Source of the DNA: Lepidodermella squamata | Lineage: Eukaryota > Animalia > Gastrotricha | DNA: 64,000 nt | Direction of reading: 5' to 3' | Assembly (NCBI GenBank): GCA_047495785.1 | Contig: JBLDXI010000054.1 | Span: 1,240,001-1,304,000 of the forward strand | Shown: piece by piece, positions 9,544 to 39,357 of the stretch | Position numbering within the stretch: position 1 is the stretch's first letter | How the letters are laid out: every line of letters starts with the position of its first letter | Notes under the pieces: model-generated | The model's database searches: none | The model's input: only the letters and a program-made list of their open reading frames with translations | What the model was told of the DNA's origin: nothing | Translations under genes and position numbers: made by a program

Positions 9544-10247
9544 TTATGTGGTTGTGAACTGAACTGAAGATATCGTGTATATTTTTCGATGATGGCTTCG
9601 TAAACTTGATTCAGGGCGAGACTGTGGCGACTCCAGGGGCTCCAGTTTTCTCATTTTTGAGAAGAAAAGCATACCCAGATTCAATGTGATGCAGGCGAAT
9701 ATCATAACAGACAAAGCTATACGCTGATAGGAGTCTTCGTCGAAAATTGCACCGGCAATGATTCCCCCGCAAGCAAGAAGCATCACAGTTCCGTAGAAGC
9801 AAGCTGCGTTCGCTTTCAAATCCGTAATATGCGAGATTTTTTTCTGCAATCAAAATATGAATATCACAAACTACCTTAAAATTGCAAGAATAGCTTACCA
9901 ATCTTAGGGCATGCGCCAAGAAACTTCCTCTTAAAGTCATGGCGCCATTGATCAGGCAAGCTGCCGCGATGACAAATTGAGACATAATGGAAGACCCACT
10001 GGCTAGACTGTAGGTTATGACCACCCTTTCAAACGTATTATCCAGCTCACTTTCGCCTATTGTTTCTACTACCGAAGGTGGTGATACTACGAAACAAATC
10101 AGGAGCAGCAGTGTGAACAAAGTCAGTAAAGCCACTCCAATACCAATTACTGCAATTCTCAAGCTTCCAAAACCAGATATGCTCCCAGTTTTGCTGGACG
10201 AGAAGTTTGTCTGTCTCGAAAATCGACCTTCATTTGCTTTCATATGT
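9544..10247 (-). pseudogene. Receptor G4, 3' part (ICL2 to TM7), cut off by the transposon insertion
   Basis: HMKANEGRFSRQTNF..TM4-5 and KKISHITDLK..CFYGTVMLLACGG..LFFSK are collinear with paralog G6. Homology stops exactly at the left TIR. Confidence 0.9.
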
Positions 10248-10269
10248 CGACGGCACACCGGAGTAACGT
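10248..10269 (+). repeat. Left TIR of the Sola1-type element
   Basis: cgacggcacaccggagtaacgt, the exact inverse of 28144-28165. Confidence 0.95.
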
Positions 10270-11522
10270 AGCACGTGCCGAGCCGCACGTTTTTGTGAGC
10301 TCGCGATTAAAAATTAGCGGCAATTTTTGCTACATTTTAAAAATAAAGTTAATTTTGCTTGTTATAAGTGAAAAATAAATAAATTTTTGTCAACAAATTC
10401 AGCCTTGACGCGTCGAAGCCGTAGAAATAATTCTTGGCATCACGTGATTGGCTGCGAGATTTGATACTTTTGTTTCTTTGTTTGTTGCAGTCGGCTTCTG
10501 GCCCAAGTTTGCTGATTTGAGCTTCATTTCTGATTTTCAGATTTCCATATTTTCATCATTTTCTCGGTAAATAATAGCTGGTGGTTGTTGTGAATAGCCA
10601 CTAGATTGATCATCACTGCTCAACAGCCACCTTGATCACCAGACGAACAAGCATGCGCATGCAAGTATGAAGAGGAAGATGAGTTGCTGAAAAGACCAAC
10701 AGTTGTTGTAGACAACTCCAGACCAATAGCTTTGCATGATTAACAGTAGTACTTGATCAATTCAAATTACAGCCTGCATGAAGATTAGGCGACGCTGCAT
10801 TGAGACGATTAGTCTTTGATTCGTTCACCAAAGATCTTTGATTCGCAAGCTAATATTCTTGAATCAATAGCCAATTGCTGATTGCTGTGACCATAATAAT
10901 TAATCGTAGCTTTAATTCACCGAGCACAGTAAAACGGCGCATGCTTATTAAGTACTTGCACACGATGTTAAGTATGTGTTCCGTCAGCGAGGGTTGGTTT
11001 TAGTTGATTGTTTTGTAGCAGGCCGTTGCTTGTTGCTTGAGCTATACTTGGGCAAAGTTCTTAGCCAGCTGCTATGAATCAACTTGAAGTGATAACTAGC
11101 TCGCTCAGCCCGGTGCTCAGCTTATGGACAATCTGTGACGAGTGCGCTTAGAGAGTTCTATTAGCTCAATGCTCAATGCTCAAAGCATCACCAACTTCTT
11201 GTAGCTCGTTAAAAGTTTAAGGTAGCCGGAATTTTAATTTCTTATTGTTATTGAACCAGAGCAGTCGAGTAGGTTGCTTCCATAAGTGTGTGCGTATCAA
11301 TGTTAACAAATGCTTGCAAATGCTGTGATGGAGGTGATAGAGATCGGAGGATTCATTTTGCTTCCTTGCATTTGACTAGATTTTTTGCATTTTACTTTTT
11401 ACTTGGCAACAACAAAAAAGTCTTGCTGGCATTCATCGACTGCAATAATCAGTAAGTTGGTTTCTTTTCAAAAATTACAACATGATAAACAATGATGTGC
11501 TGCGTTGTAGCGCCAGATTATT

Positions 11523-13903
11523 ATGCATCAGCCAATTCTCGTCTCCTTACTCCTTATTCTCGCCGTGAATTCGATTGTCATCGTTTCGTTGCCTCAGGAC
11601 GAAACAATGATGCGAAAACAGGTGCATCTGCACCTTAATCGCGTAAAGCGAGAGGTTGAAGGTGTCGTAAAGACCGAGCCGGTCGAGCCGCAACAGCCAC
11701 CACCACCGCCGCCGCCCCCGGCCCCACCAGTTGCCCAAGGACAACCTGCTGCTTCTGCTGCTGCTGCTCCAGCTACTGGCGCGATTGTTTCTGCTTCGGC
11801 AGCTGCTGCTGACGCCTCTAGTAGTAACGACACCGAGCCCCAAGCGGCGGTCAGTGAATATCCGTGGGACTTTCTTTACACGTTTGCGCGTCAATTTTAT
11901 ACAAAAGTTGACGGTATGAAAGGCGCCACTGGTTTGAAGGATTGCATCTTTAGCAAACTGGATGCAATTGCAAAAGTCGAAAATTCATGCGCGTGTGTCC
12001 ACAACGGCACGGTGCGATCGGAACGCACCATCGACATGTTTTCGTGCTTTTATCCAGATTCATGCAAAGCAGACTGGCCTGTTGTCGATTGCTTGGCACA
12101 TTTAATCAAAGACAAGATTGAAGCACCGGTTATTGGCAATTTGCTGACCATATTCAACGAAGTTGAATATTTGTGCTGCTTTGCACGGCATGCAAATGCC
12201 AAAATGCTATTTTCGACCGGCGCCAAATGGTGGACTCTGCCTCTGTCTGTCAAGAAGGAGAAGGAAGAATGTGCCAGCCATGAGCTAGTGCCGACTAATC
12301 TTGCATCTCAAGCAGGGGTTGCAGCAGCGTCCAACCCTCAAGCGAGCGGCGTCAAAACCGCCGACAGTAACACTGAGCGGTTGCTAGCAACCATGGCAGC
12401 TGTACTTCGGCAGCAGGCGGCAACAACTGCTTTAGAGCCTCATCAACCCAATTCGTTGTCATCGCTATCAGTGGCGCTTGCGAAAAGTGAGGCTGTTGAT
12501 CAATTGGTGTCTTCTCAGCAACAAAATGGTCATGTGGAGGCGGTTCGCGTTTCACCGTTGTTTGCCGACGCTTATGGCGACGTTTCAGCTCAGTCGTCAT
12601 CGTCATCGTCACTCCAAGGAATGCCTAACTCGGCTTCGCTTCAGCCCGTGTCACTGACCTACTTTGACACGGAAAAGTCTTCAAAAATTGACGCTGTTGC
12701 GGGTAATAATGGAGGTGATCCTAAAAAGGGCAAGAACGGCGCCTTGCCCTGTACGCTGAGAGATAAAGCACCTGGTCAACGGGCTTTAGAGTCGCTACGG
12801 AACTATCAGGGCGTCAACAAGCCTTGTGTCATGGCATGGCTCGAATTTGTTGCCAGCGATGAAGGCTGCCCGTGGCCAGTACCTGAATCTAGTCGCTCAC
12901 TGCTTGCAGCTGTCTTGTTCAACTGCCAGCAACAGGCCGACGTGACAAGAGTACCTCATGATTTGCCCTTGAACCAATTAGTCGCGCTCATTGGCACCGA
13001 TCAGATTCGTCTAAACTTGCTGCTGCACAACTACCAGCAAGTGAACGATTTGTGCTGTTTTTATAATTACACAAAAACTACTTGGACGTCCTATGCTCCC
13101 GTAAGTACTAGAGGAAAAACTGACAAATTTGTGGTTGTTAATTTGTTGCGCTTCCTCTGTTATTATAGCTTTTACCCGAGTACGCCCATTACATCTTTGT
13201 GGAGGTATTTTTCACCAAGTTTGTGGTGGGCAGTTACGTGCTGGCGAAATCTGCCATAGAAAAATCGGCTGGCTCTATCAACTTGCTGAGGTTGATTCTC
13301 TCGCAAGTGCTGCCCGTTTTCACCAGCGACCTGGTTAGCTATCAAAAACTCTATTACGTTGTTGTAGCTATTGTCATCTATTATACGCGTCGCTTTTGCA
13401 TGTTTTGGCATAGCCTTGGTCCTCTATTGGCAGTCGAAATGCTGCTGGTCAATTGGCGAGAAGGCATAGAGAGCGCCGGTGCCGACCTGCATCTCATCAT
13501 CATTTTGACGCGGTCGTTATTCCTATACTACGGCTACTTGCAATGCAAGCCTGGTGGTGGCGATTCTGACGCGGCGTCTGTCGACTGGTTTCGATGGCTC
13601 AAATCGCTGAGACTGCGCCGAGCAGCGAATGCTCCACTCGTTGTTGAGCAGGCTGTTGAACAGGCTGGCGCCGATGATGACGAGTCGAGCCAGGTACAGG
13701 CTCTCGAGGACTGCATGGAGACTCTTGTCAAGACCATGGTAGTGCTCGACCCCAAGCTCAAACTTGCAAGAGGCAGAAGAAAGGGCGAAGGGACCTCAAG
13801 GATGGTCAGCGACCTCGTCGAAAATGTCATGAAATTTCCGGTCCCTGATGGCAGTCCATCTGCTATACAGCAGCGATTGGAAAGAAAAGCCAAGGCAAAA
13901 TGA
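11523..13903 (+). CDS. KAR5/GEX1/Brambleberry-like nuclear membrane fusion protein (about 770 aa; exons 11523-13100 and 13169-13903), transposon cargo
   Basis: Signal peptide and two Cys-rich domains. The second (PCVMAWLEF..GC..ESSRSLLAAVLFNCQQQAD..NYQQVNDLCCFY) resembles the Brambleberry/KAR5 CRD (C..L...C..E..LA.L..LFNCQ..C). The C-terminal TM cluster YYVVVAIVIYY..LLAVEMLL..IIILTRSLF resembles GEX1 TMs. A phase-0 GTAAGT..TAG intron joins ORFs 11523 and 13199 in frame. Confidence 0.72.
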
Positions 13904-14352
13904 AAAATCAATCGGGCTAAATCACGCACGGGGCCGAAACGTAATTTTGCCTGCTCTTCTTCTTGCAGCCGCTCAGCTAATAACATCTCTTTAATATTTA
14001 GGTCATCAACCGCTACGATTCAGCCGTCATTTCTTAAATAAAATCGATCTAGTTTAGCAATATATTTTGTTGTTCTTGTTCTTGCCTTTTTTTTTACTCA
14101 TGAAAACTCTTGGCTTGAAACTTGCCGCTCAATTTTAATTCGCTTTTGCCTAAAAAAAGTCTACCTTAATTTGTACGTTGTTTATGTTGCTCATAATAAT
14201 GAAAGAAAAAATCAAATGATTAGGTAGTAGACTTGATTAAAGTTGGTCTCAATAAAGTTGATACAATCGAACGGCCGTTCTGTCCGTTCCGTTCCGTCTT
14301 CTTCTGTTTTTCTGTTGATTACACTAGGTATTTTTTTAAATTATGCATGTTG

Positions 14353-17300
14353 ATGGCTCCAAGAACTAGTAAAGCTCCAAGTAACGGCGAAAATGAAGCG
14401 AAGCAACCGCTTCCGTCTTACATCAATCCGAAACCCCGCCCAGTGAGTTATTTACAATTTTATTTCCTGAACGAAATCAATCTCATTTTTTAGTCAAAAC
14501 GCCATGTTATGGAATCTGCTAAGAGAAACGCTGGCAAAGCCTACCTGAGGAAACAATTGGTTCGAGATGGGAAGATTATTCGCCAAGCGAAAATGGTCAG
14601 AGCTAAAGTTGGGCGAAGAATTAGTTGCAAGTGTGGGCGTGAATGCTATTCAAAATTTTCTGAAAATCAGTGCGCTGCCGTTTGCCGGGCTGTGTGGAAA
14701 TCTGGCAAAATCAAGGACAGACGGACTTTTGTGTGCCGTTTTGTTACCATAATTGAAGGCCGGCGCAATTTTCGTTATGCACTCCCGGGCGAAACTAGGA
14801 AAGATACTGCAAGCCCTCGCAAGCAGTTTGATGTTGAAGTAAGTTTCTCTTTTTCTAGCCCCCGGCCAACTTGAAAAATAATTTATCCCAATGAATAGGT
14901 GTGCTGCCCTTTTTTCTTGGCATGTACCGCGCTGACTCATCGATTTATCGGCTACACTCTACAATTCAAACAGGCTCCGTTTCGTTCGGCAGTTCTTGAA
15001 GATGGGCGGGGCAGGAAAAAGGGCAGAACCGGAATTTCTAAACAGCAGCTTGAAGATGTTACTTCGTTCATTAATGGAATCGAACGATTGCCGTCGCATT
15101 TCAAACGAAAAGAGTGCAACAAGCAATTTATTGACAGGTTTCTTGCGATATTTTTTCAAAGCAAAATTATGGAGTTTTATTGCAATTTTCAATAGCTATC
15201 ATTCCATCGCGTCGCTTTATCGCGACTATTGTGATCATCTAAGGAAAAGGAATCAAGTCGAACTCGAGGAGGCCGCTTCGTCATCTGCTTCGACATCCTC
15301 CAACAGCGGTATTGCGCCAGTTCATTACGAAACGTTTAGAAGAATTTTCAGAAATTGCTTTCCCGATTTATCATTCAGAAGGCCCAAGGTAGGTCTCGGA
15401 TCGTGTCAAGTGTTTCGTTCATCCCTTATCGACGTTGTTTCAGATTGATGGCTGTAAATTTTGCCAGCGTCTCGCCAGCTTGTCAAAAGCAGATGTTGGC
15501 CGGAATAATCAAGGGCGCATCAGGAGGTTGCTTGAAAAACACTTGGCCAGACGCGATAACGCACGAGATGCGCTTCGTCGAGACATTGCATACGGCGAGG
15601 CTCACAAGCATCGCGTAAACGTAATCAATTTCGATTTCCAGGTATGCTAAACCAAAATCTCCCTGCTAACAGCCTCTTGAATTGATTATTTCCCTGTTGC
15701 GTTGATAAAGCGAAACCTTGAAGTGCCGTGCTGCAATCGCAAGTAAGTTGTTTTCAACATCTTTCCTGCCCATCTGGGTTTTGCTTAGAGTTTTTTCCCG
15801 GGAAATTTATTCTGACAACTAACTGATGCTTCTAATATGGAAGCTTGATCGTTGATGAGCTCTCAAGTTTGGATATTCAGGACATTGCTGATTAAAGAAT
15901 TAAGATCATAATTGTTTGTTATGTTTGCATTATTTTAGGTTCCACAGTAAATTGCTGGTTCGAAATGTTACTGTCTATAACACGACAACAAAACAAACCC
16001 ACAATTACATTTTCGATGAGACGGAAGATGAGTTCAATTTCTTGCTGATTTCCAGTTGGATTGTTTACATTTTTCTTTCCCTACTCTAGCACGTGGGAAA
16101 GGCGTCACGGAGGTGAGCAACAAATTTATTGTATATGAAAAATTCACGATGCATTCACTTTTTTCAGGTTGCAACTGTAATTTATCGTTACCTCACCGAA
16201 GTGATCGACCCAAACGTTGAGCATTGCATAATGTGGTCTGGTGAGACGAATTTCTTTTTTTATTGATGTCATATTAGGCTTCATTTCGATCGAAACCTGA
16301 ATGTAGATAAAAAATTTGAATTTAGACCCTGAATTTGAGGCCTAGCCTTATAGCAAGGTAAAAAACGTATTTACTACCTGAGTGCTGGCATATGAAAGCG
16401 AAACGGGAGTGGGGGGAGTGGTAGTGCGACGCTATTCTGTATTTTCATTTATATTGTTTTTTGTTTCATTTATCAAAAGATAATTGTTCAGGCCAGCAGA
16501 AAAACAAATATTTTCCGAATTTGATTCATCATGCCCTGGCCACGGCTGCTAGCATGGGCCGAAAGCTATCTCTTGTTGAGCACAAGTATTTAGTGGTGGG
16601 ACATTCACAGCAACCAGTTGACAGGTTTGTTTCAGCGTATTACTTGAACATGCCGGAAATGCTGGATGATGTTTTTTCCAGCTGTCACGCCGCAATCGAT
16701 CGCCAAATGAAACGAGTTCGCCTCATAGCTACTCCCAACGAATGGAGAGGTAAAACTTGGCTTTTCGCGATTTTTTGTAAATTTCTTTACCTTGGAACAT
16801 TGGCCTCAATTAGGCATAATTCTTGGTTCGAGTGTTCATCCTGGAATAAATTTCAAGCTTATTGAATGCCATTTTAATGAATGGTTGAATCCGAAACATG
16901 AGCCTAGGTGAGTTTTTTCCTCGAAAAGGTAAAGGTTCCCTTGAGGCCATTATGTTATAAATAAACTCAGCTTCACTGCGCGATTCGACTATCCTACTCC
17001 GAAGGGTGAACGGAGCATTTGGACAAGATACTGCTGCTACAGGTAAGCTCTTTCGAATTTGAGCACGAAATAGGCTGGTAGTTGGTAGTAGAAATCGGCG
17101 TTTCAGGTTTCCCTTCTTTATGAATTCTGAACTCTTGGGTATTTTAAAGAGGAATTCAGCTCAGCCATGTTGGAAATTCGAAATCTGCTGCTCGGATGAG
17201 CTAAGGGCTTGGGGAAAGCTAGGATTCGCCCTTCTTCAGTCAGTAAATCATTCCAATTCAATGTATCCCATTTTTCGTTTCATAAAAATTATCCAAACTT

Positions 17301-17748
17301 ATGGTGCATTATCAATTCCAGGTATTCTCGGGACCATTCGTTTTTCGAGGCAAGCTCCGATTGGAATGGGAATTACCTCCGTTTCGAAGCTACAACACAA
17401 ACGCCGTTTGCTTATAAAGCAACTAAAAGATATCCTAATTATCGGCCTGCCGAGTTCAAGATGAGTGAAAAGAAAATGAGCGATATGTTTACATGGTAAA
17501 TTCATTTATTAAATTGGTTACTACTACTACTACTACTACTGTGGTCCTTACTTGTTATTAGGGTCGCTGAGGGTGTAATACCCTTGCCCTACCTGGATAT
17601 AATTGCGAGAATTCCATCAAAAATGAAGGCGCAAGAAATTGCCAAGAAAAAGGAAGCCGTACGCCAAAAATATGCCAAATTTACCAATCCTGACAGTGAC
17701 TCTGATGATTTTGATACGGACGATCACGACACTGACGATGAATTTTAA
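14353..17748 (+). CDS. Sola1-type DDD transposase, about 15 exons
   Basis: The spliced product contains CKC..C, VC..FFL, DGRG, LPSHFKR, FRRIF..LSFRRPK-IDGCKFC, FDFQ..L..P (D1), SKLLVRN, DETEARGKG..EV, WSDNCSGQQKN (D2), HKYLVVGHSQQPVDS (D3), P.EW and KMSD. This matches the Sola1 signature (D..Q / SDNC.GQNKN / GH....D), and Sola elements make 4-bp TSDs. Confidence 0.88.
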
Positions 17749-17875
17749 TATTGAATGAAGCCATTTTATTGCCAGATTATAATATGGAAAGCCAATTTTG
17801 CGTCGAACTTATTAACTTATTATGTTGGAATTAAATTATTCATTTTGGATAACTCGCGTTTTTTTTATCGCTTAG

Positions 17876-18220
17876 ATGTTAATTTTTTTACTACTTATTT
17901 GTATGGGAAGCAGCACGGCGGGAAAAGAAATGGATTTGGGGTTGGAGAACTGGCTGTGGAATAAAGGTGTCGAGCCGAAGCCGGTTTATTTCAATATTAC
18001 TGCAGCGCCATCGGTTGATTCCAGTCTCATCTCGGATGCTCATCCCGTACTCCTAATTTTCCTAATCGCGTCCACGTCAGCAATTACTGGCTTAGCCGTC
18101 TGGTGTGCGGCAAAACGTCCTCTTTGTCCTAAAGATCGATACGTGGCTAATTTTAGGCTTTTTAACCGATCTATATATCGGCCTCTACACGTGGAAAATG
18201 CTTCTCTGGCTGATCTCTGA
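17876..18220 (+). CDS. Small type I membrane protein (114 aa), transposon cargo, function unknown
   Basis: Signal-like N-terminus MLIFLLLICMGSSTAG, NIT sequon, TM VLLIFLIASTSAITGLAVWCAA, then basic KR. Confidence 0.6.
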   Translation: MLIFLLLICMGSSTAGKEMDLGLENWLWNKGVEPKPVYFNITAAPSVDSSLISDAHPVLLIFLIASTSAITGLAVWCAAKRPLCPKDRYVANFRLFNRSIYRPLHVENASLADL

Positions 18221-18470
18221 TACTGCAATCTAATTATTGAAGTGTTGTGTATATAATTTAGCTAAAAGCCGGATAATCCAAAACAGATTAAATTTTCACA
18301 AAATTTCCCCTCACGATTTTAATTTGATTTTAGGCAGAACTAGTTAATCATTATTTGAAGACTCGGGGGTGGTGGTGTTTGGAGGAAAATCCGCGTCCCA
18401 GCTGGCTTTCAGGTTGCTTTCTGCCAAAAACTTGATTGTTTGTTTTTAAATTGGACTATTTTTTAGGATC

Positions 18471-20036
18471 ATGACCTTGATGCCGATAATTGCCGCGTTT
18501 GTCCCATTATTTTTTGGCGCTGAGTGTCACGTGATCGCGATTGGCCGTTATGTTCTGCCGGGTGATGAAATGACGCTGGTTAAATCGTCTCTCCGCGACG
18601 TTCAAATTTTCCAAGTTGATCCGATCGATTTTGATTTCTTCAAAATCTGGCACGTTAGCAAGGTAGTGTACCCAAGCATTGAATTCACGTTGATGAAGAA
18701 ACTTGAATTTATAATAATTTTTAAGGTGGTTTTCCGGCCGCTTGAGGAAAAGCGAATGACAATCACAGTGAACAAGCCTGATCTCACCGATGATCGACTT
18801 ATAGCCGAAAGATGCGCGAATTTTACAACCCAATTTATCGAGGATTTATACTACCTCTCGGCGCGAACAATGGGTGTTTACAATGGATCGCAAGTCATCG
18901 CAATGGACCCTTTTGAAGCAGCGCTGATAGCTGTTTGTTATCATGATGGCAGTTACTTCATCAGCAATCATCACGCTCAACTCTCGTTACAGAATTTGGT
19001 CATGACTCTTGTAGGCTTGGTGCTTATTTTTCTTGGCCCTGTTATCGCAAATCAAGGGTGGCTATTTTACTCGTTCGGGGGCTGTCTCGGCCTAATAACT
19101 TCTGTCTTATCATTGTTGTTCTTAGTTTGGAAATGTTCCTCTTCACTGTTGAAAAAATCACCCGCGTCTGCTCTGGCAGGCACTTTATTTGGCAGTTCAA
19201 TGTTCACGCAAATTCTTACAAAAATCTTCGTAGATACAAACATAAGTTTTTATGCTTTGTTGCTTCTCGTTATCTCTGGCTCGCTGGGATTTTCGTCATT
19301 TTATTTGATTGGAGCTATGAATGCGAAAAATGAGCGATTGTCGTTTATTATCAAGTTTCACAGCGTTGGAATAGGCTTTTCTTTGTTGCTATTTCTCAGC
19401 GGTTTTAAACGTTTGGAAATCAGTCTGGCTGCATTTGTTGTTTTTGTTTTAGCTAAAACTTCGTTCTTCTCGACACTTTTTCGTACACTTCTATCGTCTC
19501 CTATTGCTGCCTTGATAAAGATTGGATTCCTGATTAGATGGATTGCTCTGATATGTCTAAAGCTCTTGAAATGCTTAAGGTGGCTGGTTTGCTCCCTGTT
19601 TTTCAAATTCGCATCGCCAAAGAATGAAGAGAGAGCCTCTGCAATTCTAAGTGCGTCTGAGTGTGACGAGACAAAGAAATCGTGCACTGCTGTCACTATC
19701 GATAGAATGGATTATTTGAAAAACTTTAGCTCCTTTCATAAAAATGTGTTACTTGTCCCACCTTCCGAGTATCACGAGAAAGCGTTGATCAAAACTAAGC
19801 TTGAACTTGATAAATTATATGCTTATTGCAAAACGATTGATGCTTTTCAGCTGATGCAACAACTGTATTATGAACCCATAAATTTTGCTAGAGCGGTGAG
19901 CCCTCTTAAACAATGCGTTCTCGGTTCCGAAGTAGGGAAATTTGACGACAAAGCCTTTATGTATGATTTTATTGAAAAACTCGATGATGACGACTCTGAT
20001 AATACTAGCTGTTGTTTCTCTAGTGATGAAGAATAA
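18471..20036 (+). CDS. NEMP/TMEM194-like inner nuclear membrane protein, transposon cargo
   Basis: Signal peptide and TM block GLVLIFLGPVIANQGWLFYSFGGCLGLITSVLSLLFLVWK (NEMP pattern G..LFF....LS....FYY..G...G...S.L...F...K). C-terminal SEYHEKALIKTKLELDKLYAYC..EPINFARAV resembles NEMP EEY..QG..ET..AL.ELR.FC..P..FA.F; acidic tail. Probable in-frame 63-nt intron at 18663-18725. Confidence 0.82.
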   Translation: MTLMPIIAAFVPLFFGAECHVIAIGRYVLPGDEMTLVKSSLRDVQIFQVDPIDFDFFKIWHVSKVVYPSIEFTLMKKLEFIIIFKVVFRPLEEKRMTITVNKPDLTDDRLIAERCANFTTQFIEDLYYLSARTMGVYNGSQVIAMDPFEAALIAVCYHDGSYFISNHHAQLSLQNLVMTLVGLVLIFLGPVIANQGWLFYSFGGCLGLITSVLSLLFLVWKCSSSLLKKSPASALAGTLFGSSMFTQILTKIFVDTNISFYALLLLVISGSLGFSSFYLIGAMNAKNERLSFIIKFHSVGIGFSLLLFLSGFKRLEISLAAFVVFVLAKTSFFSTLFRTLLSSPIAALIKIGFLIRWIALICLKLLKCLRWLVCSLFFKFASPKNEERASAILSASECDETKKSCTAVTIDRMDYLKNFSSFHKNVLLVPPSEYHEKALIKTKLELDKLYAYCKTIDAFQLMQQLYYEPINFARAVSPLKQCVLGSEVGKFDDKAFMYDFIEKLDDDDSDNTSCCFSSDEE

Positions 20037-20245
20037 TGTGGCTCGGAATATTCAGTTCATTCTTATCGATCAGAGGCAAGATGTAAATAAATCGAAAATT
20101 TCTGAAAACGTATTTTTGAGAGTGTTTGTTTTGAATAATTTCTGATGTCCTTCTAATTTGAGTTCGGCTGATGAAACCCAGAATTTCGTAGAAATATTTC
20201 CAGCACCGGCTAGCTCGCTGAGGTAAACAGAAAGGCCGATACTTA

Positions 20246-20587
20246 CAGGGTGTCCCAGACGATGTGAACAATTATTGAATTTACCAATTTTTTGGAAATC
20301 GAACCTGCCGAGAGAAAATTCCATCTTTTTATCTGCGATTTAGCCGAAGAAATTAAAAATTTACCGGTGAAAACCCGGAAAACCCCGATGGTAGCTGATT
20401 CGGTAATTTGCTGTATTTTACCCGGTTGGACGTGTTTTCTCCGGACGTGTTTAATCTCATTATCAAGTGACAACATGAATTTTTACTTTTCCGGGATTTT
20501 TCTGGCCATGAGATGTTACTTCGGTTCTCATTCTGAGTATTTAAACCCGTGTATTTTCTCGCCTTGCGTTACTTATGGGACACGCTG
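20246..20587. mobile_element. Degenerate Tc1/mariner-type MITE nested inside the Sola element
   Basis: TA-CAGGGTGTCCCA at the left end and TGGGACACGCTG-TG at the right end (11/12 inverted match, right TA mutated). Confidence 0.55.
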
Positions 20588-21363
20588 TGTACTGGAATAA
20601 TTCTGTTTGATAAGACAATAGGTAGAATCAATCATCGTGAATGCAAGCCGAGTACGCAGCCGAGTAAACAAAAGAAGCGCGCGCACACGCGAATATATTA
20701 TGTGCGCAAAGCACTGGGCATTTATTATGCTGCGAAGCACACGCGTATTATTATAACAGCAAGCATTATTTCCTATATTAATGGGTGAAAATGTAATCCT
20801 TCGAGACGACTGCAAACATCTGCGGCTGTTTCTGCTATGTCCAAACTCAACCCAAACCAAAGCCTCTAGTAACATCGTATTGGTTCTTTCCGGCGAGAAA
20901 GCAAAACAACTAATTAGCCCATTCATTTATTCAAAAGTACCAGCAAAATCCAGTTTTCCGAATGGTTTTATTCTACCTCAAACGACAGATCAAGCCAATA
21001 TAATCACGAGAAATTGAGAAGCAAAGGAATTTCTAGAAAATTTCGTTCTTTCAGTACTGGAATCAGCGGCATTTCAAAATCGGTATTGATTTTTTCGATT
21101 GAAAACAGTTTCGCGATTCCTGGAGATGCAGTCGGCTAGAACAAAAAACAAAAATTGAATCTTATTCACGGATAAAATTAGGAAATGTGAGCAGACGAAA
21201 GAATCGTCTAAAAATTATCGAATTTAATTAATTGACCCCGACCTTTTGCTCGACCCCTGGAAACAGTTGAATCAAGCAATCATTCAAAGTTATCGTGTTT
21301 CTTTCTCTTGTCCACCTTAAATAAACCGCCAAATTGATTTTTTGTATTTATTTTGATTTTTCA

Positions 21364-22012
21364 ATGGTCATCTCTCGAATCCTAAAATGGCTTGCGGGTC
21401 CGAGTTCGCACCGTAACGCGGCGGCTATTGAGCAATTGCGAGAGCTATCTCTTCTGCTTCACGGCTTTATTGGTGACCCGTTGTCGACTGTTACAATTTA
21501 TCGCATGAAGCGCATGGTGCGTGAGCTCGAGAAGTCTACTTCGAAGAAGCGGCTCGTTGAAGACAGCGGCGGCTCAACGGTCTCAACGGTAAAAAATCTG
21601 TTGAAGTTGCCGTTTCAATAATTCTCTAAACGGCCATGAGATCGAGTACGTTAAATCGATCCAAGACCCCCAAGATAAAAATCTGAACTTCGGAATCTCT
21701 ACTGCTCTAAAAATTGCATCAGGATTTCGGAGATTTCCCGGAAACGGACGCGGACCAGAAGGTGGCGAAGATCGACGTGAAGAAGTGATGCCCCACCAGG
21801 ACTATGCTTCGACTGTGTATTTTCCATGCCTACTTACAGTAATTAGTCGACTCGAATAAGTTTTTTCATACTTTTTTGAAATTTAGGATACAGGGTCACC
21901 GACTACAACTATTAGTTCCAATTCCAGGATTATAGCAAGCTTTGCCCGAGAAGCCCTTGGACCTTGCATCCGTAGTAATTATTGCTGCATTGTTACGACC
22001 ATCGATGCCTAA
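21364..22012 (+). CDS. Putative three-exon unknown protein (about 180 aa), transposon cargo
   Basis: MVISRILKWL..GGSTVST followed by a GTAAAA donor. Short GT-AG introns join open exons IEYVKSIQDP.. and DTGSPTTT..IDA*. No family recognised. Confidence 0.35.
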
Positions 22013-22393
22013 GCTAGCCGACGTGGGCCAATCCCAGTTTGGACCAATTATCGATTTTTGCGGCTCATCGGACGGGAGAGTTTTAGCCTAGAATTGGAGA
22101 CCTTTTTGGCCATTTCACTTGTTCAACGCCTGGAACTTGGCGGCTCTCGGTTCAAAGTCAACCAATGGTCTGAAATCTTTCTCAGGGTGACTGCTATCGC
22201 CACCCCACACATTGCTTCCCGGCCAACAATCGATGTCGACGAGATCTTGGGCGATTGATTGGCCAGGGTCATCCTGCGACTACAACGCTTTGCCCCGAGA
22301 AATAATTGGGCCTGGCATCCGTAATTCCCGCTGCATTGTAACGACTATGCCTGAGCTATGACTCTTCCTGAGCTCGATGCCTGAGCTAGCCGA
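21939..22393 (+). repeat. Imperfect direct repeat of about 85-105 bp (21939-22021 and 22287-22393)
   Basis: gctttgccc(c)gagaa..gg.cct.gcatccgta..gctgcattgt.acgac..cgatgcct.agctagccga occurs twice. Confidence 0.75.
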
Positions 22394-23693
22394 TCGATCT
22401 GATCAAAAATGCGGCTGATCGGACTAAAAACTGGAGTTTTAAGCTGGAATTTGGACCCTTTCTTGATGACAATATCGGCCTTAGATAATAATGGCTAATT
22501 GCTAATAATCTTTGTGATTGATAGCAAGCCGGAGTAAAAATAAAAAAATAAATAAATTCATACCTTGTATCAGCATCGACCAAGGTTTTTCCAAGTCATT
22601 CAGTCTGGAGATGAAAATTTCGCGACTGCAGAGGCGATTTCTGTGTGGGCGCAAGCCGGCAAGTCCCATGGCGTCATTGCATTTGGGCGGTTCCATGGCA
22701 GAGCTCGTTATCAACGCAACGCCAATTAATCATGTCGACGAGGCAGCGGCCAAAGAAATTCGTAGGTAGACGGATGCGAGAATCGTTTCGAGCGAGAATC
22801 GCCCAGCTTCAACCTTGGATTGCCAATCTTCGAATCTGTGGCATCACGACAAGGTTTTCCGGCATCGGCGGCATTAGCGCAGCATACTTTGAAAAGCCGC
22901 GGCGCCACCAATAAATGGCAGGGAAATTTATATAATTTAAACAAAATACTATTCAAAAAATGAATGAATATGTTAGCGATTGATCAAACGCCACCTAGAC
23001 TCGTAGGATGATGGAAAATAAGCAACAGTCCCAGCAAGAGAAATTAACCTGAATAATGGCCGTGCAGTCAAATGGCCGATGACTGAGCTTGTTGCCATCA
23101 TCGCCATCATCGCATTACGTCAAAGTCCCATCATCGAGCCAGAAAATTAACAAAGTGATTAATCTATAAATTTATTGGCATGAAATGGCGCCGGTCGAAG
23201 ATCTAGGCGATCTAGGCGGTATACCAGTCAGCTTTCCGGCCACCGTCAATCAAAAAATTTCAAATAACCTAGGCTCATCATTGAATCATGTGAGCCTTGT
23301 TGAAAATTAATCGAGTATTCGAGTACCGGAAAAAAGAAAATGCCAGCCATGCTCGATAAACTCGATAAATAAAATAGCACAAAACCCTACAAATTTAGAA
23401 AACATGTCATCTTGTTTGCAAATAGGCAGCTAGTAAAAATTGCAGATTGAATAGGAGTTGAAAGGCTTTTAGGGTGGAATTCCAGATGAAGCAAAGCATG
23501 GTGACAATTTAGTTAGCCGTGAGCTCATGCAAAAAAGCGCTATAAGCTTGATTTCAGACTTAATAAATTCTATAGCCGTTACCTGATAATGTCGACCCTT
23601 TCTGACGAATCTGATATAAACACAAAGCTCATTTTCAATTTTCAATTATCTTTCTTCATTAATATTTTCAATATCTATACATCTCTTCGTTCA

Positions 23694-23990
23694 CTAGGTC
23701 ACTAGTTTCACTACGTCACAGGCGTCGAGCCGCCGCCCCCCGCGTGTTGTACGCGGGGCCATCTGTTTCAGGCAGATTGGGGTTTTTCGGAAACCGAACG
23801 ACGATCGGGGTTGAAAACGCCGTCGTGCTGCCGGAATCGTCCAAGAGGCCCAATTCAACTTCGTTGCGATTCGTCGCCTGGCTATCGCGATAGGATCGCC
23901 TGGATAGCGCGAAATGACATGGTAAACGCCAGAGGCAGCCGCCGTGAAGGCTACGCCGGCAACCACTCCGGCAAAAAATTGTTCCATCAA
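23694..23990 (-). CDS. Putative small membrane-anchored basic protein (98 aa), transposon cargo
   Basis: N-terminal hydrophobic helix FFAGVVAGVAFTAAASGVYHVI, then an Arg-rich tail. GC-rich relative to flanks and preceded by a duplicated upstream module. Confidence 0.45.
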   Translation of the reverse strand: MMEQFFAGVVAGVAFTAAASGVYHVISRYPGDPIAIARRRIATKLNWASWTIPAARRRFQPRSSFGFRKTPICLKQMAPRTTRGGRRLDACDVVKLVT

Positions 23991-24723
23991 AAATCAAAAA
24001 CAATAAAACCTATTCAATTGAGTAATGGGATTATTAGCCATGTTACTATTTTTAGCAAGGCTCGCGGGATGCTGCTTACTTTAGTAAACAGCCCAATCGA
24101 GGAAAAAAAAATAACTTTCTTTACCTGGCTGGAGGCCACTAGACTTTAAATACTGGAAATTTACCTCTTGGCCTCGGCGTTCGAAGGCGCTATTATATAA
24201 CGAATCGAGGCCGCAGCGCTAGCGCAGCTCCACATACAAATCCGGCAAAAATGTCTATTATACTATGAAATTATCCTCAGAATTAGTTCAATGTATCTCG
24301 AGCTTCCATCCCATTATCTACACCTATAGGTATGAGTTGAGCGAAATTAAAATCGAAAGTGATTAGCTGGCACTAAGAAGAGAATGCTGCTAGCTGTAGA
24401 GGAGCAACGAAAATTAGCCATCGAAATTTTCAGAAATTGAGAAAATAAGCATTCGACTGGGCAAATAATTTGAAGTATCAAGCTTGATCCGAGATCAATC
24501 AACGCCGCAATAGCCGCGAGCCGCGACGATTCCATCAAATAGCTATTAAATAATAAAACCTATTCAAACAAGAAATGAAAATATTAGCCATGTTGAAATG
24601 TTTAGCAAGATCCGCTTAAAGTCTAGGGAACAGCCCAGGCGAGTGGCGAGTGGATGACAATTACCTATTTCTTTACCTGCCCACAGGCTAAGCGATTCAA
24701 CCACTAGAAATTTACCTCTTGGC
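23982..24723 (-). repeat. Duplicated module of about 190 bp (23982-24172 and 24530-24723), each copy leading into a small minus-strand ORF starting MME
   Basis: Shared blocks ttccatcaaa, aataaaacctattcaa, tattagccatgtt, tttagcaag, aacagccca, tttctttacctg and aaatttacctcttggc in the same order and spacing. Confidence 0.8.
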
Positions 24724-25655
24724 AACGAAAGCCATGGAGTTTACTACGCGTCAAGTTTGATCAGCTTTAAACTAGCCGAATCAAATAGTAGAGTCTGCTA
24801 AATCTCCAGTTTTCCCAATAAATGTCAACCCCAAAAATTGATACGAAAAAACTCTGAAAATTAATCTGCGGGTAATATAGATAGATAGATGCCAATTGGC
24901 TTACCAGTAAACAAACAAGTACCACTCAATCGTCTCGAGTCCATGTAGAGCGCGCATCAAGATACGAATGATAAAAATAATACCAAATTGATCCAACACG
25001 TTCAAACCAGACATTTTTTCTGCTCCAAATTAACAAGAGCTAGCCGCGCCAATTTAAAGCCAAAGCATTTAAAAAAGCAGTAAAAGCGGGCTTTATAGCT
25101 TTATAGTAGATGGATAAGCAGTTGAATGACTTTAAACATCGCCAGATATTGTACGTATAATTAAATTAAATTAAATTAAATTAATGGCCAAATTCTAAAA
25201 TGGAATGGTAAAAGTACACAGTTATGAAAGCGTAAAAATTGAGGATTTGATGTGCTTTGCCATAGCGGCATGCTGATTTTTGTTATCAAGCTTGAAATTG
25301 TGTTAGTTTAGCCCTAGCTTTAGTCTAACTTTGGAATTCAACTATTACGCCAAAAAGTATAGTTGAATGGTGATAGAATGAATGCATAAGTAAAGCATGT
25401 TAGCAATTTTAAAACGCTGCATTTTCATTGAAACTGATGGAAAAAAGATGAAAAAGCGTTGCATTCTAACCCTGAAACCACCTGTAGACGGCAGATTCAT
25501 GACGTTGATGGTGCATGTTGAAGTGATTTTGCGTGTTGTTGCATGCTGCGAGTGGATGTTCGGATGCCTGAAGTAAAACAAAAAAAACAAGTAAATCACG
25601 CCGCACTTTTTTTAATCTCTTTTTTTATCTCGTCGCGATCGCTTTGTCAGCGCAT

Positions 25656-25825
25656 TCATTTCGGCGCTGACTTGCCGCCTGTTTTCGCCCTCGTGCTGGC
25701 AGCGGGTGGCGGGATCGGTTTGATGGCGGCTTGAGGATTGGGGGGAACTTGTTGTTCGCCGCCACTCGCACCACCTCCGGCTCCTCCGTTCCTTCGCTCC
25801 GGCTCCTGCTCCTCTTCGCCTTCCT

Positions 25826-25859
<34 letters not shown>

Positions 25860-26545
25860 ATCGTTGTTGTTATTGTCACCGCCGGCTTGCTGGGCGCCGA
25901 TTGTGGTCGTATCAGCGGTCGCATTGGTGAGCAGCGGTATAGCCGATTCATTCAGCTGGCCTAATCGCGTTGCAGTTAGGTCAGCAACCGCTCCGGCGCT
26001 AGCTCGAACGCCATCGGTAACGATCTGGAGTAGATCAGCGCGAAGGGCGGCCGCGCGAGCTTTTCGAGCAAAGCACCACCTCGCCAGCCTGATGACCTGG
26101 CCGGCAAAGGTGACGATCGCAAAAAACAGAGCGGCGTAAACGGCTGCCCTTTGGGCATCCATTCCGATAGCGTCTCCTATAAATCAGCGATGATAGAATG
26201 TAAACAAAACAAAGGTGATCAATGAATATACTAAGAAAAGCTTCCAACTGCGCCTCGTCTCGGCCACAGTTGGTCGGGCAGCACGGGGCGGGCTGGGAAG
26301 CAGGCGCAGGAAGAGGCGGAGCAGGACCAACAGGCGGGGCGGCGGGACAAAAATTGCACGGCCCGCGAGCCCCTCTACACGCAGCCTCGGACGCGGCTGA
26401 AAAAAAGTTAGCAATCAAAAAACAGCAAACAAACAAATAAAAGTAAATTACTTGTTCTTTCGACGCACGACTGCCTTGAATTGACGGCAACCGGCGCTGC
26501 GCCGCAGCAGCCAATAACAATAAGCACACAAAAATGTAAAGCCAT
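25656..26545 (-). CDS. Three-exon type I membrane protein (259 aa) with Cys/Pro-rich ectodomain, acidic tract and H3-tail-like C-terminus, transposon cargo
   Basis: Exons 26545-26452, 26396-26232 and 26176-25656 are joined by two 55-nt GT-AG phase-1 introns into one open frame: MALHFCVLIVIGCCGA (signal)..CNFCP..CCPTNC..AAVYAALFFAIVTFAGQVI (TM)..D12EEGEEEQE..STRAKTGGKSAPK*. Confidence 0.75.
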
Positions 26546-28143
26546 TCTCATTTCTAAATAACGACACCAATAACAAATAACAAATAAGCAATAACAAGCT
26601 GGTAATAATCGCTAAATTAAAACAATCCATAATGCAATCCTTTGAGCAGGAGCAGGTTTAATCAATTCAACAGCGTCGTCAATGAATCAGAGGTCACAGA
26701 ATTTTGAAAAATTAAACTTGATCAATCAATAAGCACCAACGAGTCGATCCTCGCAGAACTTGGTCCACGGCTGCACACGGGGCCTGGCAGAGTTTGTAGG
26801 CTTGTGGCTCGGGTAGGACAACGGTAATTGCAGTGACCCTGAAGCATCGCAATCATCAAAAAGAAACAAACAAACAAACAAACAAGAGCAAATTGCTTGT
26901 TCGATGATTACATAATGCAGGGCTGCTAGCCGTCGACAGGGGCTAGCACTGCACTGCATTAACAACCATCAACTTTGACAGTAAAACATCTAGGCATAGC
27001 ATAGCATGACATGGTAGCAGGCAAGAGGTGTAAGCTAGAATGCGTTATAATTAATGCTAGGTAGCTAGAAAGTGTACAAGTTCAAGTCTTGTCTTTACAA
27101 CTTGATAGTGTGATCGTTCAGCCTGATCAAATATGCTAATAATCATTGCAGCAGCAGCAGTGTTGTGCAACAAGTGTAGACAAAATGCGCCAAGATGGCG
27201 TATAATCGTATCCATAAATAAACCTGGACGTCCCTACTGCATGCATTCATGAATCAAGTACTTGAATTACAATGATTTGATAGCCTTGACCTACATAGCG
27301 ATTACTTTACTCAATCTAGCAGTGTGTATGTTTGTCACTCCACAGGTACTACAAGTACTACAGATACTACAGGTACTTGATCTGCAGCAATCTGGCAGGC
27401 GGAAAACAATCGCGTGCTTGTCTAGACAGTGGGACACTATCAATAACAAGTATAATGAAAAGCTGAGCTCTACTGACACAGCCAAATGATCGCGTGCCCC
27501 ACACGGACAAAAAAACCCCATAAAACTAGCACACAAACACCCACAACCTAACCGCCATTCAAGTAACAGTTTACCAACTTTGTCTCATAAAAGTTGGCTA
27601 GCAATAAAAAAATTACTATAGCAGACAGTGATGAGTTGTTTGCTTCATCATGTTTATTGTGAACGAGGCCGCCCTACTATACTAGACATTGACCGCTCTA
27701 GCTGTGACCCAGACTTTATTAGCCCCCAAGCATTGCGGCACAACTGAGACGACAATCAACTTTATTGATGTCATTAAGAAGAACGATGACGGCTATCCCG
27801 GCTATCATAATGCGCATCATATGACCTAAAAGACAACAAAAAGTACTACAAAAATCCACGCGATCAACAAAAGGATGGGACGCGGAACGTCTGGTGTCCG
27901 GGGTGTTGGGCGCACGCGTTTTTTTCCGGGATCAACTCGTGCTGTCTGCAAAACCTGCCACGCGACAAAGACCAACGGTTTTTTTTCAAAAGCGTAGCGT
28001 GCTAATGTCAAGGACAAATGCAAACCAAAAAAAGTCATTGAATAATATTCTCCATTTTATTTTAACAATTTATACATGAGTTTAATTATTAAATGAGCGC
28101 TATTTTCACCGCTGTCGACCAAAAACCTGAAAAATGATTTACC

Positions 28144-28165
28144 ACGTTACTCCGGTGTGCCGTCG
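28144..28165 (-). repeat. Right TIR of the Sola1-type element
   Basis: acgttactccggtgtgccgtcg followed by the TSD atgt. Confidence 0.95.
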
Positions 28166-30102
28166 ATGTAGCGCAGCCTTTTTCAGAGCCAGAGATGCCA
28201 ATTCCAACTTTCCGGACATGCCAAAAATAATACATGTAATCCCGAGAAATAGCATTGCCAGAGCCAAAGTCGCTAGAGGTTGGAAGTTTGAGTCGAAATG
28301 CATGGGTTGGAGCAGCACAGAAGTCAGAAGTATCACATTTCCAATCAGGATGAATCGCCCAAGCCCTGGGACGGAAGCTGCGATTCGTTCGTTTGTCTTG
28401 CGACATTTTTCACGCCATATGAAAGTGAAGATGCAAATCGCAAGCAATAAGACTGCTACAGCAGTGATCGCTATGTAGGCGGGAAGTTCGAGAAGCGGGG
28501 AAACTGTTGTCAATAAGTGCACAGTATCTGTGGGAGGCTTTCCGTTAGATGTTCTCCAGACTATTGGCGAGAGACTACAATTTAGCGTTCGGGTCTTTGA
28601 ATAGTAAATGCATATTGGAGATGGTTGGACTTTTTTTGTAATCGGATTCCTTCTCAGTTGAGTCAAGCCCTGTATCGGGCTTCCGCCTGTGTTCAGCGTT
28701 GTATTACTTTCGAAAGCTGCGTCCCCTACTTTCAGCTTGAGGCGAACCGAGAAGAGGGCTTCTTTTATTGTGTCGACGATCAAGCTGCCATTTTGCTTGA
28801 AAAATTCGCCGGCGGTCGCCCATTGCGACAGAGTTAGATTATCTGTAAAAGCAAAACGTCATTATTCGAATCAAACAATCAATTGAATTCAAGGGTTAAT
28901 AGTTTTTAAACTTACTAGATCGTAAAAGCGTCTCGGCTCTGTCCAATACAAACGCAGCAATCATCGTGTTGTCATAACAGTTATGCCTCCTCGTGGCAAA
29001 GAACGGTGAAATTTCTGGTCTTTCTATTCTCGCCATCAGCCAGTTTGCTAAATCCGAGCCTGTATTGCCTAGCGAATCTTTTTCATTGTCCAGTCGCAGA
29101 TCAGTCTGACTGGCACACCCAAAAGCGAATAAACTTTCAAGCACTTCCTCCAGCATACCCTCCGTACACCAATCAAAGCGGGAAGGGTCATTAGGTACAA
29201 AAACGGAAGTTAGAAGGGTAAAAATGACCACGTTTGGCCCAAACAGCTTATAACGATGTAGATAGCAAGCCGCTCGAGCCGGGCTTAGTGCGTTTAGGAT
29301 GATAATCCTAGGATTCACCTTTTTCAAATCTGAAACTGCTTGATCGATGTATTGTGGCTCAGCTAATGTGCCAAGTAGGTAAGGAATCTTAAACACCCCC
29401 AATACCTTCGAGCCGTTTCTCTTTTCGAAATCAGCGATGAACTGTGATTCGATCTGTCCAAAGTAATCGCTACCCTCAGATAAAATTGCGACCTTACGCC
29501 AGTTCATTGAATTGAGGAACTCGTGTAGGCTGTTGTAACAGACGATAAGTTGCGGCTGTGTTACGAAAAAGTTGGAATAGCGCGATCTCATGGTTTGAGG
29601 CTCGCTTTGGACTGCTGTCAGTACGATTCCGACATAGTTGAAATAACGAACGATTTGTCCGGTGTGATAGTTTGCGGTGCTTGAGGGACCCACTGTCAAA
29701 GGCAGTCGATCCGGGACGGAGTCGTTTAATTGAAGCTGGGACACAATTCTTCCAACCCCTAGAGGTCTAGAAAACTGGGGCCAAAAATGACAATATGTAA
29801 TTTATAAAGGTTACATCGCCGCCTACCAAGTCATCGACAAAGTCAACGGCTAATTCATAACCAGAGAGCATGTTCATCTTTTTTACGCTATCGAGAACGA
29901 GTCTGATCCCTTCGGTACAGATGGGCCCGAGCGGCTGAACTGTCCCACCATAGTTAAACGACGCCATAATACTGATCACTTTCCGACTAGTATCATTCGG
30001 GTTGTATGTTGATGAAAAAATTCTAGGCTCCAAAGAAGCTGTCATTGGAATTTTGGCCATTGCAAACCCAGAAGGTAGCAAGAAAATTATTATTGCAAGC
30101 AT
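28166..30102 (-). pseudogene. Receptor G4, 5' part (signal peptide, VFT, TM1-3), interrupted by the transposon
   Basis: ORFs 29767..30102, 28896..29744 and 28139..28783 are collinear with G6/G7. The frame runs KKAALH into TIR-derived RRHTGVTW*. Confidence 0.9.
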
Positions 30103-37788: not shown

Positions 37789-39357
37789 CGGATGAAGAAA
37801 TATGTTAGTTCTCGATTTTGCGGACAGCTTTTATATCGAGGTTGAAGATCTTAACGACAGTGCATTATCGTCGATACATTCCTCATAGAACGATCAGAAT
37901 CCCCAGACAAGTCGTGGGCTTCATTTCCGAAGCGTTTGAATTTGCCACGCAAAGCAGCGACACGTTTACAAGTGATTATCACATTGATCTGGAGAGAATA
38001 TGCGTCTTGCCTTGCTTCGTCGAGTATTGAAAATCGTCTATCAGTGTCGCCCTTTTTTTTAAGAGGACAATTGCAATCTTACTTGAATGCCATTCCAACC
38101 ATTAGAGCGATGAGGAACAGGAAGTAATGCTAGCTAACAGCTTGATATCCGGTTAGTGCTGTGACGAGCTTCATTTGTTTCTCAAATCCTCCTCTCTCCG
38201 ACATCTTTCGCATGGCTACTGAAGTGGAACCCCCATCGGCCTAACAACAGAGCGCCAACTGCACAGCTTGAGAAAATTCGAAACCTTACGCACGTCTGTG
38301 TTAAATATCCGCCCGACGTTTTTTGTACGTCAGGAAAAACGTCGATTTCTCAGTTCCAGATCCACCAGTTGGTCTTTATTTTTCAGTTATAAAGAGCGTT
38401 GTCAGTTGTTTAACTCTGATTTAACCTTTGTGTTGGTTTATGTTGGCATTGTAAACTCCTGTATTTTGTTCTCCTTTCAGACAAAAGGAAGGCAAAACAA
38501 ATTTAGGCTTCAGATTCATAAGGCTCTTTTTGTTACCAAGTAGGATCATTCTCTCTGTGTCAACATTTAGCTTTTAGCTCCCGAGGCAAAGGTCAGAGGT
38601 GGGAATAGGTCGGGTTAAACGGCCGGCAAATTTACCGGCTGCCGGTTTGGTCAGGTATGGGTAGTAGCAGAAATGGACCCGCTACAGCAAGACTTTATTA
38701 TGCTTGCCCGCTACAGCAAGGTATTTATTATGCTCGGCCAGAGCCAATCAACATAATGGATTTTGTCTTATGGGGTTCAGTTTTTTGATAAGGGATTCTT
38801 CATTTTTATGTCAGGTTTATTATGGCTACTATTGATTATCGGCAATCATTGGATTGATTTGTTTTGTGAACTCAAGCCAGAATAAATTGCGCTGTATTTA
38901 TTTGATGTTGATTTGATGTTATCAATCTCACATCGAGTAAGTTTGACCCTCATATCATGGCTAATTTGAAATCATATGCTAAACTAGGTTTATCTGCAAC
39001 AGGAAAGACCGACCCGGTTCTTTCGGTGCGAGGTTAACCGGGGATTTCGGCCAGGCCTTTCGGTTCGGCACATCTCTATTTAGAGCTAATTCAATATTGC
39101 ATGAGACGCTCCAGCAGAAACCAGCCCAAATATTCATTGTTATAGCAAACAAGGAAGGAGGTAACCAAGGTAAAGAAATTTCGATTTTCATTCCATTTTC
39201 GAATTATTCGAATTATTTGAAATAGCGGACAATAAACTACTGAATTAACTTCTACTGAAAGAACGAGAATAACTCCATGGTATGTTATAAGCAAACATAG
39301 GAACAGTCTGAGTAGGTAGATTTGTTCTAAACAGGACCCAAAGTGGACCGCTGGGAT

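Follow-up and report, generated by a model that had tools for sequence, protein, structure and literature searches.

Animal cut-and-paste transposons usually consist of a transposase gene between two terminal repeats. DNA transposons also capture host genes, and larger mobile elements are built on other machinery: Starships use tyrosine recombinases, Teratorn is a fusion of piggyBac with a herpesvirus, and Mavericks or Polintons are self-synthesising elements with a polymerase and an integrase, at sizes of tens to hundreds of kilobases. Among the cut-and-paste families, a preference for AWDT target sites is a hallmark of Sola1 (PMC3845634). Here we describe a Sola1-type element of 17,918 bp, measured from terminal repeat to terminal repeat (positions 10248-28165), in a 64,000-nucleotide stretch of the genome of the gastrotrich Lepidodermella squamata (assembly GCA_047495785.1, contig JBLDXI010000054.1, positions 1,240,001 to 1,304,000; hereafter the window). 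Besides its transposase gene it carries four genes for predicted membrane proteins, and we consider it probable that this is a recently inserted Sola1 cut-and-paste transposon whose ancestor acquired the four as passenger genes, one of them a divergent member of the NEMP family.

Two families of nuclear-membrane proteins are relevant to this cargo. In NEMP1 a signal peptide is followed by a luminal domain, a block of transmembrane (TM) segments and a C-terminal domain (PMC4422613); the protein has been described as acting in germ-line nuclear envelopes and in fertility. The KAR5/GEX1/Brambleberry proteins are recognised by a signal peptide, one N-terminal cysteine-rich domain with six conserved cysteines, one to three coiled coils (a hairpin) and then two to three C-terminal TM segments (PMC4291462, PMC9324357). 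An earlier note on this DNA, made from the letters alone, had assigned cargo to both families.

Element boundaries and insertion site

The element is bounded by terminal inverted repeats (TIRs; CGACGGCACACCGGAGTAACGT at the left end) that match at all 22 positions, and is flanked on each side by the tetranucleotide ATGT as a target-site duplication (TSD; Table 1). Likeness between the two ends stops after these 22 bp. Allowing up to three mismatches, the TIR is present in the window in two copies only, against a chance expectation of zero. The duplicated ATGT satisfies the A-W-D-T pattern of Sola1 targets, a single site that is weak evidence when taken alone.

Tandem related genes within the same window provide empty sites with which the occupied one can be compared. 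The left host flank (9544-10184) aligns with 35163-35810 and with 39343-39981, and the right flank (28166-28465) aligns with 35870-36169 and with 40041-40340. Both paralogues, at ~35.87 kb and ~40.04 kb, are continuous across the two junctions and have a single tetranucleotide at the corresponding position, ATGT in one and ATCT in the other. In silico removal of positions 10248-28169, which comprise the element and one copy of the TSD, restores an unbroken exon frame (...LASLALKKAALHMKANEGRFSRQTNFSS...) that is colinear with the paralogue at 35486-36535. From these empty sites and the restored frame we conclude that the 17,918-bp unit was inserted in one piece into a coding exon, with duplication of four bases. 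The earlier note had read the locus as one 17.9-kb transposon unit; the exact TIRs, the 4-bp TSD and the paralogous empty sites all agree with this.

The interrupted exon belongs to a receptor gene with a weak match to 7tm_3 in Pfam (E 0.0065), compared with E 1e-11 for a related gene in the window. The insertion appears to be young, since both halves of this host exon are still open and the two TIRs are identical.

A Sola1-type transposase

The transposase gene was modelled with 16 exons and without internal stops. All 15 introns of the model are GT-AG; 14 of them measure 51-239 nt and one measures 35 nt. Majorek et al. 2014 (PMC3985635, supplement) give RNase H-like cores for Sola1-1_AP, Sola2-1_HM and Sola3-1_HM, which we used for comparison. 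In blastp the whole Sola1-1_AP core aligned with residues 347-482 of the spliced model (54.3 bits, E 3e-13), with the blocks FD.., N.TVY, DE.E, SDNC.GQ..N and GH(T/S)Q in the same order. The Sola2 core matched around the second aspartate only (24 bits, E 0.007) and the Sola3 core gave no blastp match. The catalytic blocks in our model read FDFQ, SDNCSGQQKN and GHSQQPVD, the third aspartate (in GHSQQPVD) being outside the printed reference core and assigned from its position only. Pfam searches with single exons returned a sub-threshold match to DUF7869 in the frame of exons 10-11 (19.5 bits, E 8e-4). Given the alignment with the Sola1-1_AP core, the behaviour of the Sola2 and Sola3 controls and the fit of ATGT to AWDT, the predicted protein can soundly be assigned to Sola1, as the earlier note had proposed in describing a DDD transposase of this type.

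One intron of this gene may be defective. Alignment with Sola1-1_AP points to an ancestral intron 7 of 62 nt (16028-16089) that is in the right phase, has a typical length and gives a product, DETE-A-RGKGVTEV, colinear with the reference; this intron is AT-AG. Its sole canonical alternative is the 35-nt intron, at 16055-16089, and the model is free of stops only if this shorter intron is used. Use of the shorter intron adds about ten residues, DEFNFLLIST, to the catalytic core, and these coincide exactly with a 10-residue gap in the alignment with Sola1-1_AP. The simplest reading would be that the first base of the intron 7 donor mutated from G to A, after which the message would either be spliced at a weak cryptic donor, so that residues are inserted in frame into the catalytic core, or keep the intron, with a stop at 16087.

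Cargo genes and element interior

All four cargo gene models are free of stops and, by hydropathy, each encodes a protein that begins with a hydrophobic, signal-like segment and has one or more predicted TM segments. The introns of genes 1 and 4 are without exception GT-AG and keep the reading frame. These models bear out the earlier count of at least four well-formed cargo genes with signal peptides and TM segments. Genes 1-3 share the strand of the transposase gene, from which and from one another they are separated by spacers of 127-443 bp; gene 2 begins 127 bp past the transposase stop. Gene 2 has no match in Pfam or PHROG, and an exact-protein look-up found no record of its product or of the NEMP-like protein. 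The predicted product of gene 4 has a signal peptide, an ectodomain rich in cysteine and proline, a TM segment at residues 99-117 and an acidic, low-complexity tail.

The G+C content of cargo genes 1, 2, 3 and 4 is 51, 45, 40 and 61%, respectively, compared with 45% for the transposase gene and 42-45% for host exons. The high values of genes 1 and 4 derive in part from runs of Pro/Ala/Gly and from acidic low-complexity runs. These differences in composition suggest that the cargo genes may have had separate origins. No paralogues of the cargo genes occur in the 46 kb of host DNA around the element in the window.

Arrangement of these genes as an operon resolved by spliced-leader trans-splicing was considered and dropped. 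A pyrimidine-rich AG acceptor lies 0-4 nt 5' of the start codon in three of the five element genes, against a background of 22%, an enrichment that is not significant (P=0.07).

The gene-poor interior contains direct local duplications at 21975-22393 and 23998-24723, with units of ~350-370 and ~550 bp that are 77-95% identical. It also contains a nested insert of ~345 bp (20246-20590) resembling a miniature inverted-repeat transposable element (MITE), with imperfect inverted ends CAG[G/C]GTGTCCCA. As this nested insert looks old, the lineage of the element would be older than the present insertion. Rfam and tRNA scans gave no matches.

The NEMP-like protein

The only Pfam match of the 521-residue product of gene 3 is to NEMP (PF10225). 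At full length the protein scores 28.6 bits (E 1.4e-6) against a cut-off of 28.7; the excised membrane region exceeds the cut-off, at 31.2 and 32.2 bits (E 1-2e-7). The match spans profile positions 3-172 of 249. Hydropathy indicates a signal peptide, an N-terminal domain of ~160 residues, five to seven hydrophobic helices between residues 175 and 378, a C-terminal domain of ~140 residues and an acidic tail, and an open frame of 521 codons in DNA of 40% GC is beyond chance. Region B, the conserved C-terminal part that binds RanGTP and BAF, was not detected: nothing matches profile positions 173-249, and the last 190 residues of the protein have no family match in Pfam. AlphaFold2 run without alignments gave a model too poor to use (pLDDT 39.6).

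We accept the predicted protein as a divergent member of the NEMP family, as the earlier note had suggested. It resembles NEMP1/TMEM194A in the sequence of signal peptide, luminal N-terminal domain, block of about five TM segments and soluble C-terminal domain. It is unlike the described members in its low score (~31 bits), its partial coverage of the profile, the undetected region B, the lack of introns and its location on a transposon. With that score the gene is far too divergent to have been copied recently from a canonical NEMP gene of the host. It has no introns while the adjacent transposase gene has fifteen.

Cargo gene 1 and the KAR5/GEX1/Brambleberry family

The predicted product of gene 1 begins with a signal peptide (residues 5-23 strongly hydrophobic), contains Pro/Ala-rich low-complexity sequence and two cysteine-rich modules, and ends with weakly hydrophobic C-terminal helices and a charged tail. 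The modules, at residues ~126-245 (eight cysteines) and ~406-526 (six cysteines), both end in LCCF and align with each other at E 9e-4. Between them is a stretch rich in Ala, Ser, Gln and Thr, with 11% Pro+Gly. Hydropathy passes the 1.6 threshold at residues 602-620 only; three or four weaker helices are found in residues 533-650 and are followed by the tail of ~120 residues. No coiled-coil hairpin is evident, no dedicated coiled-coil predictor having been applied. A model of residues 105-526 from AlphaFold2 without alignments was unusable (pLDDT 36.6).

Searches for relatives of gene 1 were largely empty. The Pfam profile Tht1 (PF04163) matched neither the whole protein nor either cysteine-rich module, even at E<=10. 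A phmmer search of 1.84 billion representative proteins with exon 1 returned one low-complexity match only, and a PDB sequence search gave nothing below E 0.1. We also compared the modules with the cysteine-rich domains (CRDs) of three plant GEX1 proteins (At, Br and Os; supplement of PMC9324357). Pairwise local alignments were no better than those of shuffled sequences (p about 0.1). A profile built from the three domains scored 4.7 bits on the first module, a score reached by 14 of 1000 shuffles (p about 0.015). By eye, the pattern CF..DS...CK....CL..L and the roughly similar cysteine order recall the GEX1 domain, a likeness that is a lead and not a test.

The protein thus resembles the family in its signal peptide, in the order and spacing of the six main cysteines of its N-terminal module, which are roughly those of plant GEX1 CRDs, and in its C-terminal hydrophobic helices. 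It is unlike the family in having no profile match, a doubled cysteine module, no evident hairpin and a long charged tail beyond the helices. Membership of gene 1 in the KAR5/GEX1/Brambleberry family is doubtful, with a modest chance of being correct, and on present comparisons the protein is best described as an orphan. The identity proposed in the earlier note is not upheld, with no Tht1 match, non-significant pairwise alignments and a marginal profile score. Its broader proposal of a nuclear-envelope kit survives in part: the NEMP-like component stands through PF10225, the KAR5/GEX1-like component has no profile match, and only one cargo protein is tied to the nuclear envelope.

Searches for relatives and further copies

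A word-index protein search with the NEMP-like open reading frame (ORF), the transposase ORF and a 604-residue host receptor ORF gave zero matches. As even the receptor was unmatched, the host lineage is evidently unrepresented in the collections searched. The TIR and the NEMP-like protein had no match in the metagenomes scanned, nor did the TIR or either large cargo protein in IMG/VR. PHROG gave no meaningful matches for the cargo, and no PDB sequence search returned anything below E 0.1. We found no report in the literature of Sola elements with such cargo, Repbase being outside this search.

The remainder of the window

Outside the element the window is densely filled with divergent class-C-like receptor genes, at least nine in number and arranged both in tandem and in inverted orientation (7tm_3 match at E 1e-11; examples in Table 1). 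Their N-terminal halves matched no recognised ligand-binding-domain family, and the word-index protein search returned no relatives for them. This array and the short GT-AG introns are in keeping with an animal genome. A head-to-head inverted pair of these genes lies around 39.9-45.5 kb. A separate element of 1,391 bp (51330-52720) has perfect 32-bp TIRs TCTTGGGACTAATAGTAGATGGACTCGACACT and a 6-bp duplication GAGTGG, and probably represents a non-autonomous DNA transposon from a different family. In addition, a MITE-like element of 419 bp (60980-61398) has 25-bp inverted ends, matching at 24 of 25 positions, and a 6-bp duplication TCAAAC.

Table 1. Positions of the element, its genes and the neighbouring host features in the window.
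Feature	Position	Strand	Remarks
Left TSD, ATGT	10244-10247		Single ATGT at homologous paralogue site; fits Sola1 AWDT
Left 22-bp TIR	10248-10269	+	22/22 bp identical to right end
Right 22-bp TIR	28144-28165	-	Exact reverse complement of left TIR
Right TSD, ATGT	28166-28169
Interrupted host exon, downstream half, 7tm_3-like receptor gene	9611-10247	-	Still open
Interrupted host exon, upstream half	28166-28783	-	Still open; weak 7tm_3 match
Sola1-type DDD transposase gene, 16 exons, 728 aa	14347-17748	+	blastp with Sola1-1_AP core
Transposase exons 1-8	14347-14442, 14494-14838, 14899-15137, 15196-15388, 15444-15641, 15711-15742, 15939-16054, 16090-16112	+
Transposase exons 9-16	16168-16240, 16480-16624, 16682-16749, 16814-16907, 16971-17042, 17107-17238, 17322-17495, 17562-17748	+
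Probable ancestral transposase intron 7, 62 nt, phase 1	16028-16089	+	Donor ATGAGT, not GTGAGT; 10-aa gap relative to Sola1-1_AP
Cargo gene 1, 770 aa, two exons	11523-13100, 13169-13903	+	68-nt GT-AG intron
Cargo gene 2, 114 aa, type-I-like membrane protein	17876-18220	+	Signal peptide; TM at aa 58-76
Cargo gene 3, 521 aa, NEMP-family-like, intron-less	18471-20036	+	Pfam PF10225
Cargo gene 4, 261 aa	25656-26551 (exons 26551-26452, 26396-26232, 26176-25656)	-	Two 55-nt GT-AG introns
Interior without convincing gene (~5.6 kb)	20037-25655		Short ORFs without family matches
Intervals of the AG acceptors near start codons	17749-17875, 18221-18470, 26552-26560
Example receptor genes	2-1810	+
	2688-4502	-
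	35486-37389	-
	39681-41623	-
	43845-45845	+
	59116-60933	-

Discussion

The likely history of this locus can be outlined from what is known of the transposon family. The DDD transposase would bind the 22-bp TIRs and excise the whole 17.9-kb unit, and reinsertion would take place at an AWDT-type tetranucleotide, here ATGT, that becomes duplicated during repair. The present copy would in this way have landed in a coding exon of one gene of the tandem class-C-like (7tm_3) receptor array. The passengers were most likely gained at the DNA level by the element's ancestor and kept open during its spread. Their products would be made in the membrane system of the endoplasmic reticulum (ER) and nuclear envelope, and the three other than the NEMP-like protein would be lineage-specific orphans.

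Several observations weigh against this account. The transposase of the present copy may be mis-spliced and the copy non-autonomous, its movement perhaps reliant on sister copies, and no second copy of the element was found in the searched collections, where the host lineage is unrepresented. Homology searches beyond Pfam were all empty and gave no source for the cargo. All four cargo products are, moreover, signal-peptide/TM proteins, which is hard to square with purely random capture and argues for an origin or a function that the four share in the membrane system of the ER and nuclear envelope. The same point bears on a passive, one-off capture, in which host DNA was mobilised by a Sola1 element or by a pair of Sola1 ends and happened to hold these genes, irrelevant to the element and heading to decay. 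Such an event is quite possible, if short of probable. DNA transposons are known to take up host genes, the passengers differ in composition, this copy may have an impaired transposase, and a stretch of ~5.6 kb in the interior (20037-25655) is devoid of convincing genes and holds local duplications and a nested MITE-like insert. Four passengers that are all intact and all of the signal-peptide/TM class are, however, not what passive capture would predict; nor does it sit well with a NEMP-like gene so distant from its family profile (score ~31 bits) that it is no recent duplicate of a canonical NEMP gene of the host, or with the lack of passenger paralogues in the surrounding 46 kb of host DNA.

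The possibility favoured by the earlier note, a selected nuclear-envelope toolkit of KAR5/GEX1/Brambleberry-type and NEMP-type proteins that manipulates germ-line or zygotic nuclei for the element's own transmission, seems improbable to us. Gene 1 has no Tht1/KAR5 match at E<=10, no relatives among 1.84e9 proteins and no significant pairwise alignment with GEX1, and it has two cysteine-rich modules instead of one, weak TM segments and no evident hairpin. What recommends the idea is that one cargo protein is NEMP by profile, NEMP1 being described from germ-line nuclear envelopes and in connection with fertility, that the four passengers are all membrane proteins and all open, and that three of them share the transposase strand with spacers of 127-443 bp. 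The NEMP match is nevertheless limited to profile positions 3-172 of 249, with the Ran/BAF-binding C-terminal region undetected. The layout of gene 1 is loosely KAR5-like (signal peptide, N-terminal cysteine-rich module, C-terminal hydrophobic helices), and the GEX1-CRD profile ranks its first module above 98.6% of shuffles. The more specific proposal, that the transposon maintains a diverged NEMP and possibly a KAR5/GEX1-like protein as a nuclear-envelope module of the germ cell or zygote for chromatin access or transmission, we hold to be decidedly improbable. It is highly improbable that the membrane proteins are envelope- or fusogen-like proteins derived from a virus or another mobile element, which would make the locus a transposon-virus chimera of the Teratorn/Maverick type. 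A glycoprotein-like set of type-I and multi-pass proteins on a mobile element may recall envelope modules, but neither the TIR nor the two large cargo proteins matched IMG/VR, PHROG held no meaningful match, no capsid, polymerase, integrase or packaging genes are found among the ORFs of the element, and NEMP, the family of one cargo protein, is cellular.

Read as a Sola1 transposon with acquired passengers, this apparently young element, three to six times as long as is usual, would add a new type of payload, four intact membrane-protein genes of one cell-biological class, to animal cut-and-paste transposons. Its cargo includes a putative member of a nuclear-envelope family needed for animal fertility, and raises the question of whether transposons, like viruses, ever carry genes of host cell biology to their own advantage. 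Should the cargo prove a mere passenger, the element still indicates that a Sola1 transposase is able to mobilise 18 kb or more, and that whole genes can spread by this route. With its exact ends, the empty sites that serve as a control within the window and a host exon that is interrupted yet undecayed, the case is a clean one and well suited as a starting point for studies of populations and expression.

Among other elements with accessory genes, Starships, Teratorn and Mavericks/Polintons are alike in that the accessory genes travel with the element's own mobility gene. They differ from the present element, which is a plain DDD cut-and-paste transposon with a far smaller payload. Gene-capturing Pack-MULEs and CACTA elements (PMC3597677) are likewise bounded by TIRs and carry non-transposase genes acquired at the DNA level, with introns kept in two of the genes here. 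They usually contain fragments or chimeras of host genes and are known mostly from plants, whereas the cargo described here consists of whole, open signal-peptide genes of one functional class in an animal. The closest relatives are the Sola1 elements themselves (Bao, Jurka & Kapitonov 2009), represented by Sola1-1_AP of the pea aphid, with which our element shares the DDD core block for block, a 4-bp TSD of AWDT type and short TIRs. It departs from them in its length of 17.9 kb, compared with 1.5-2.8 kb for candidate autonomous Sola1 elements of insects (PMC3845634), in a transposase gene with 15 short introns, and in the four membrane-protein genes that it carries.

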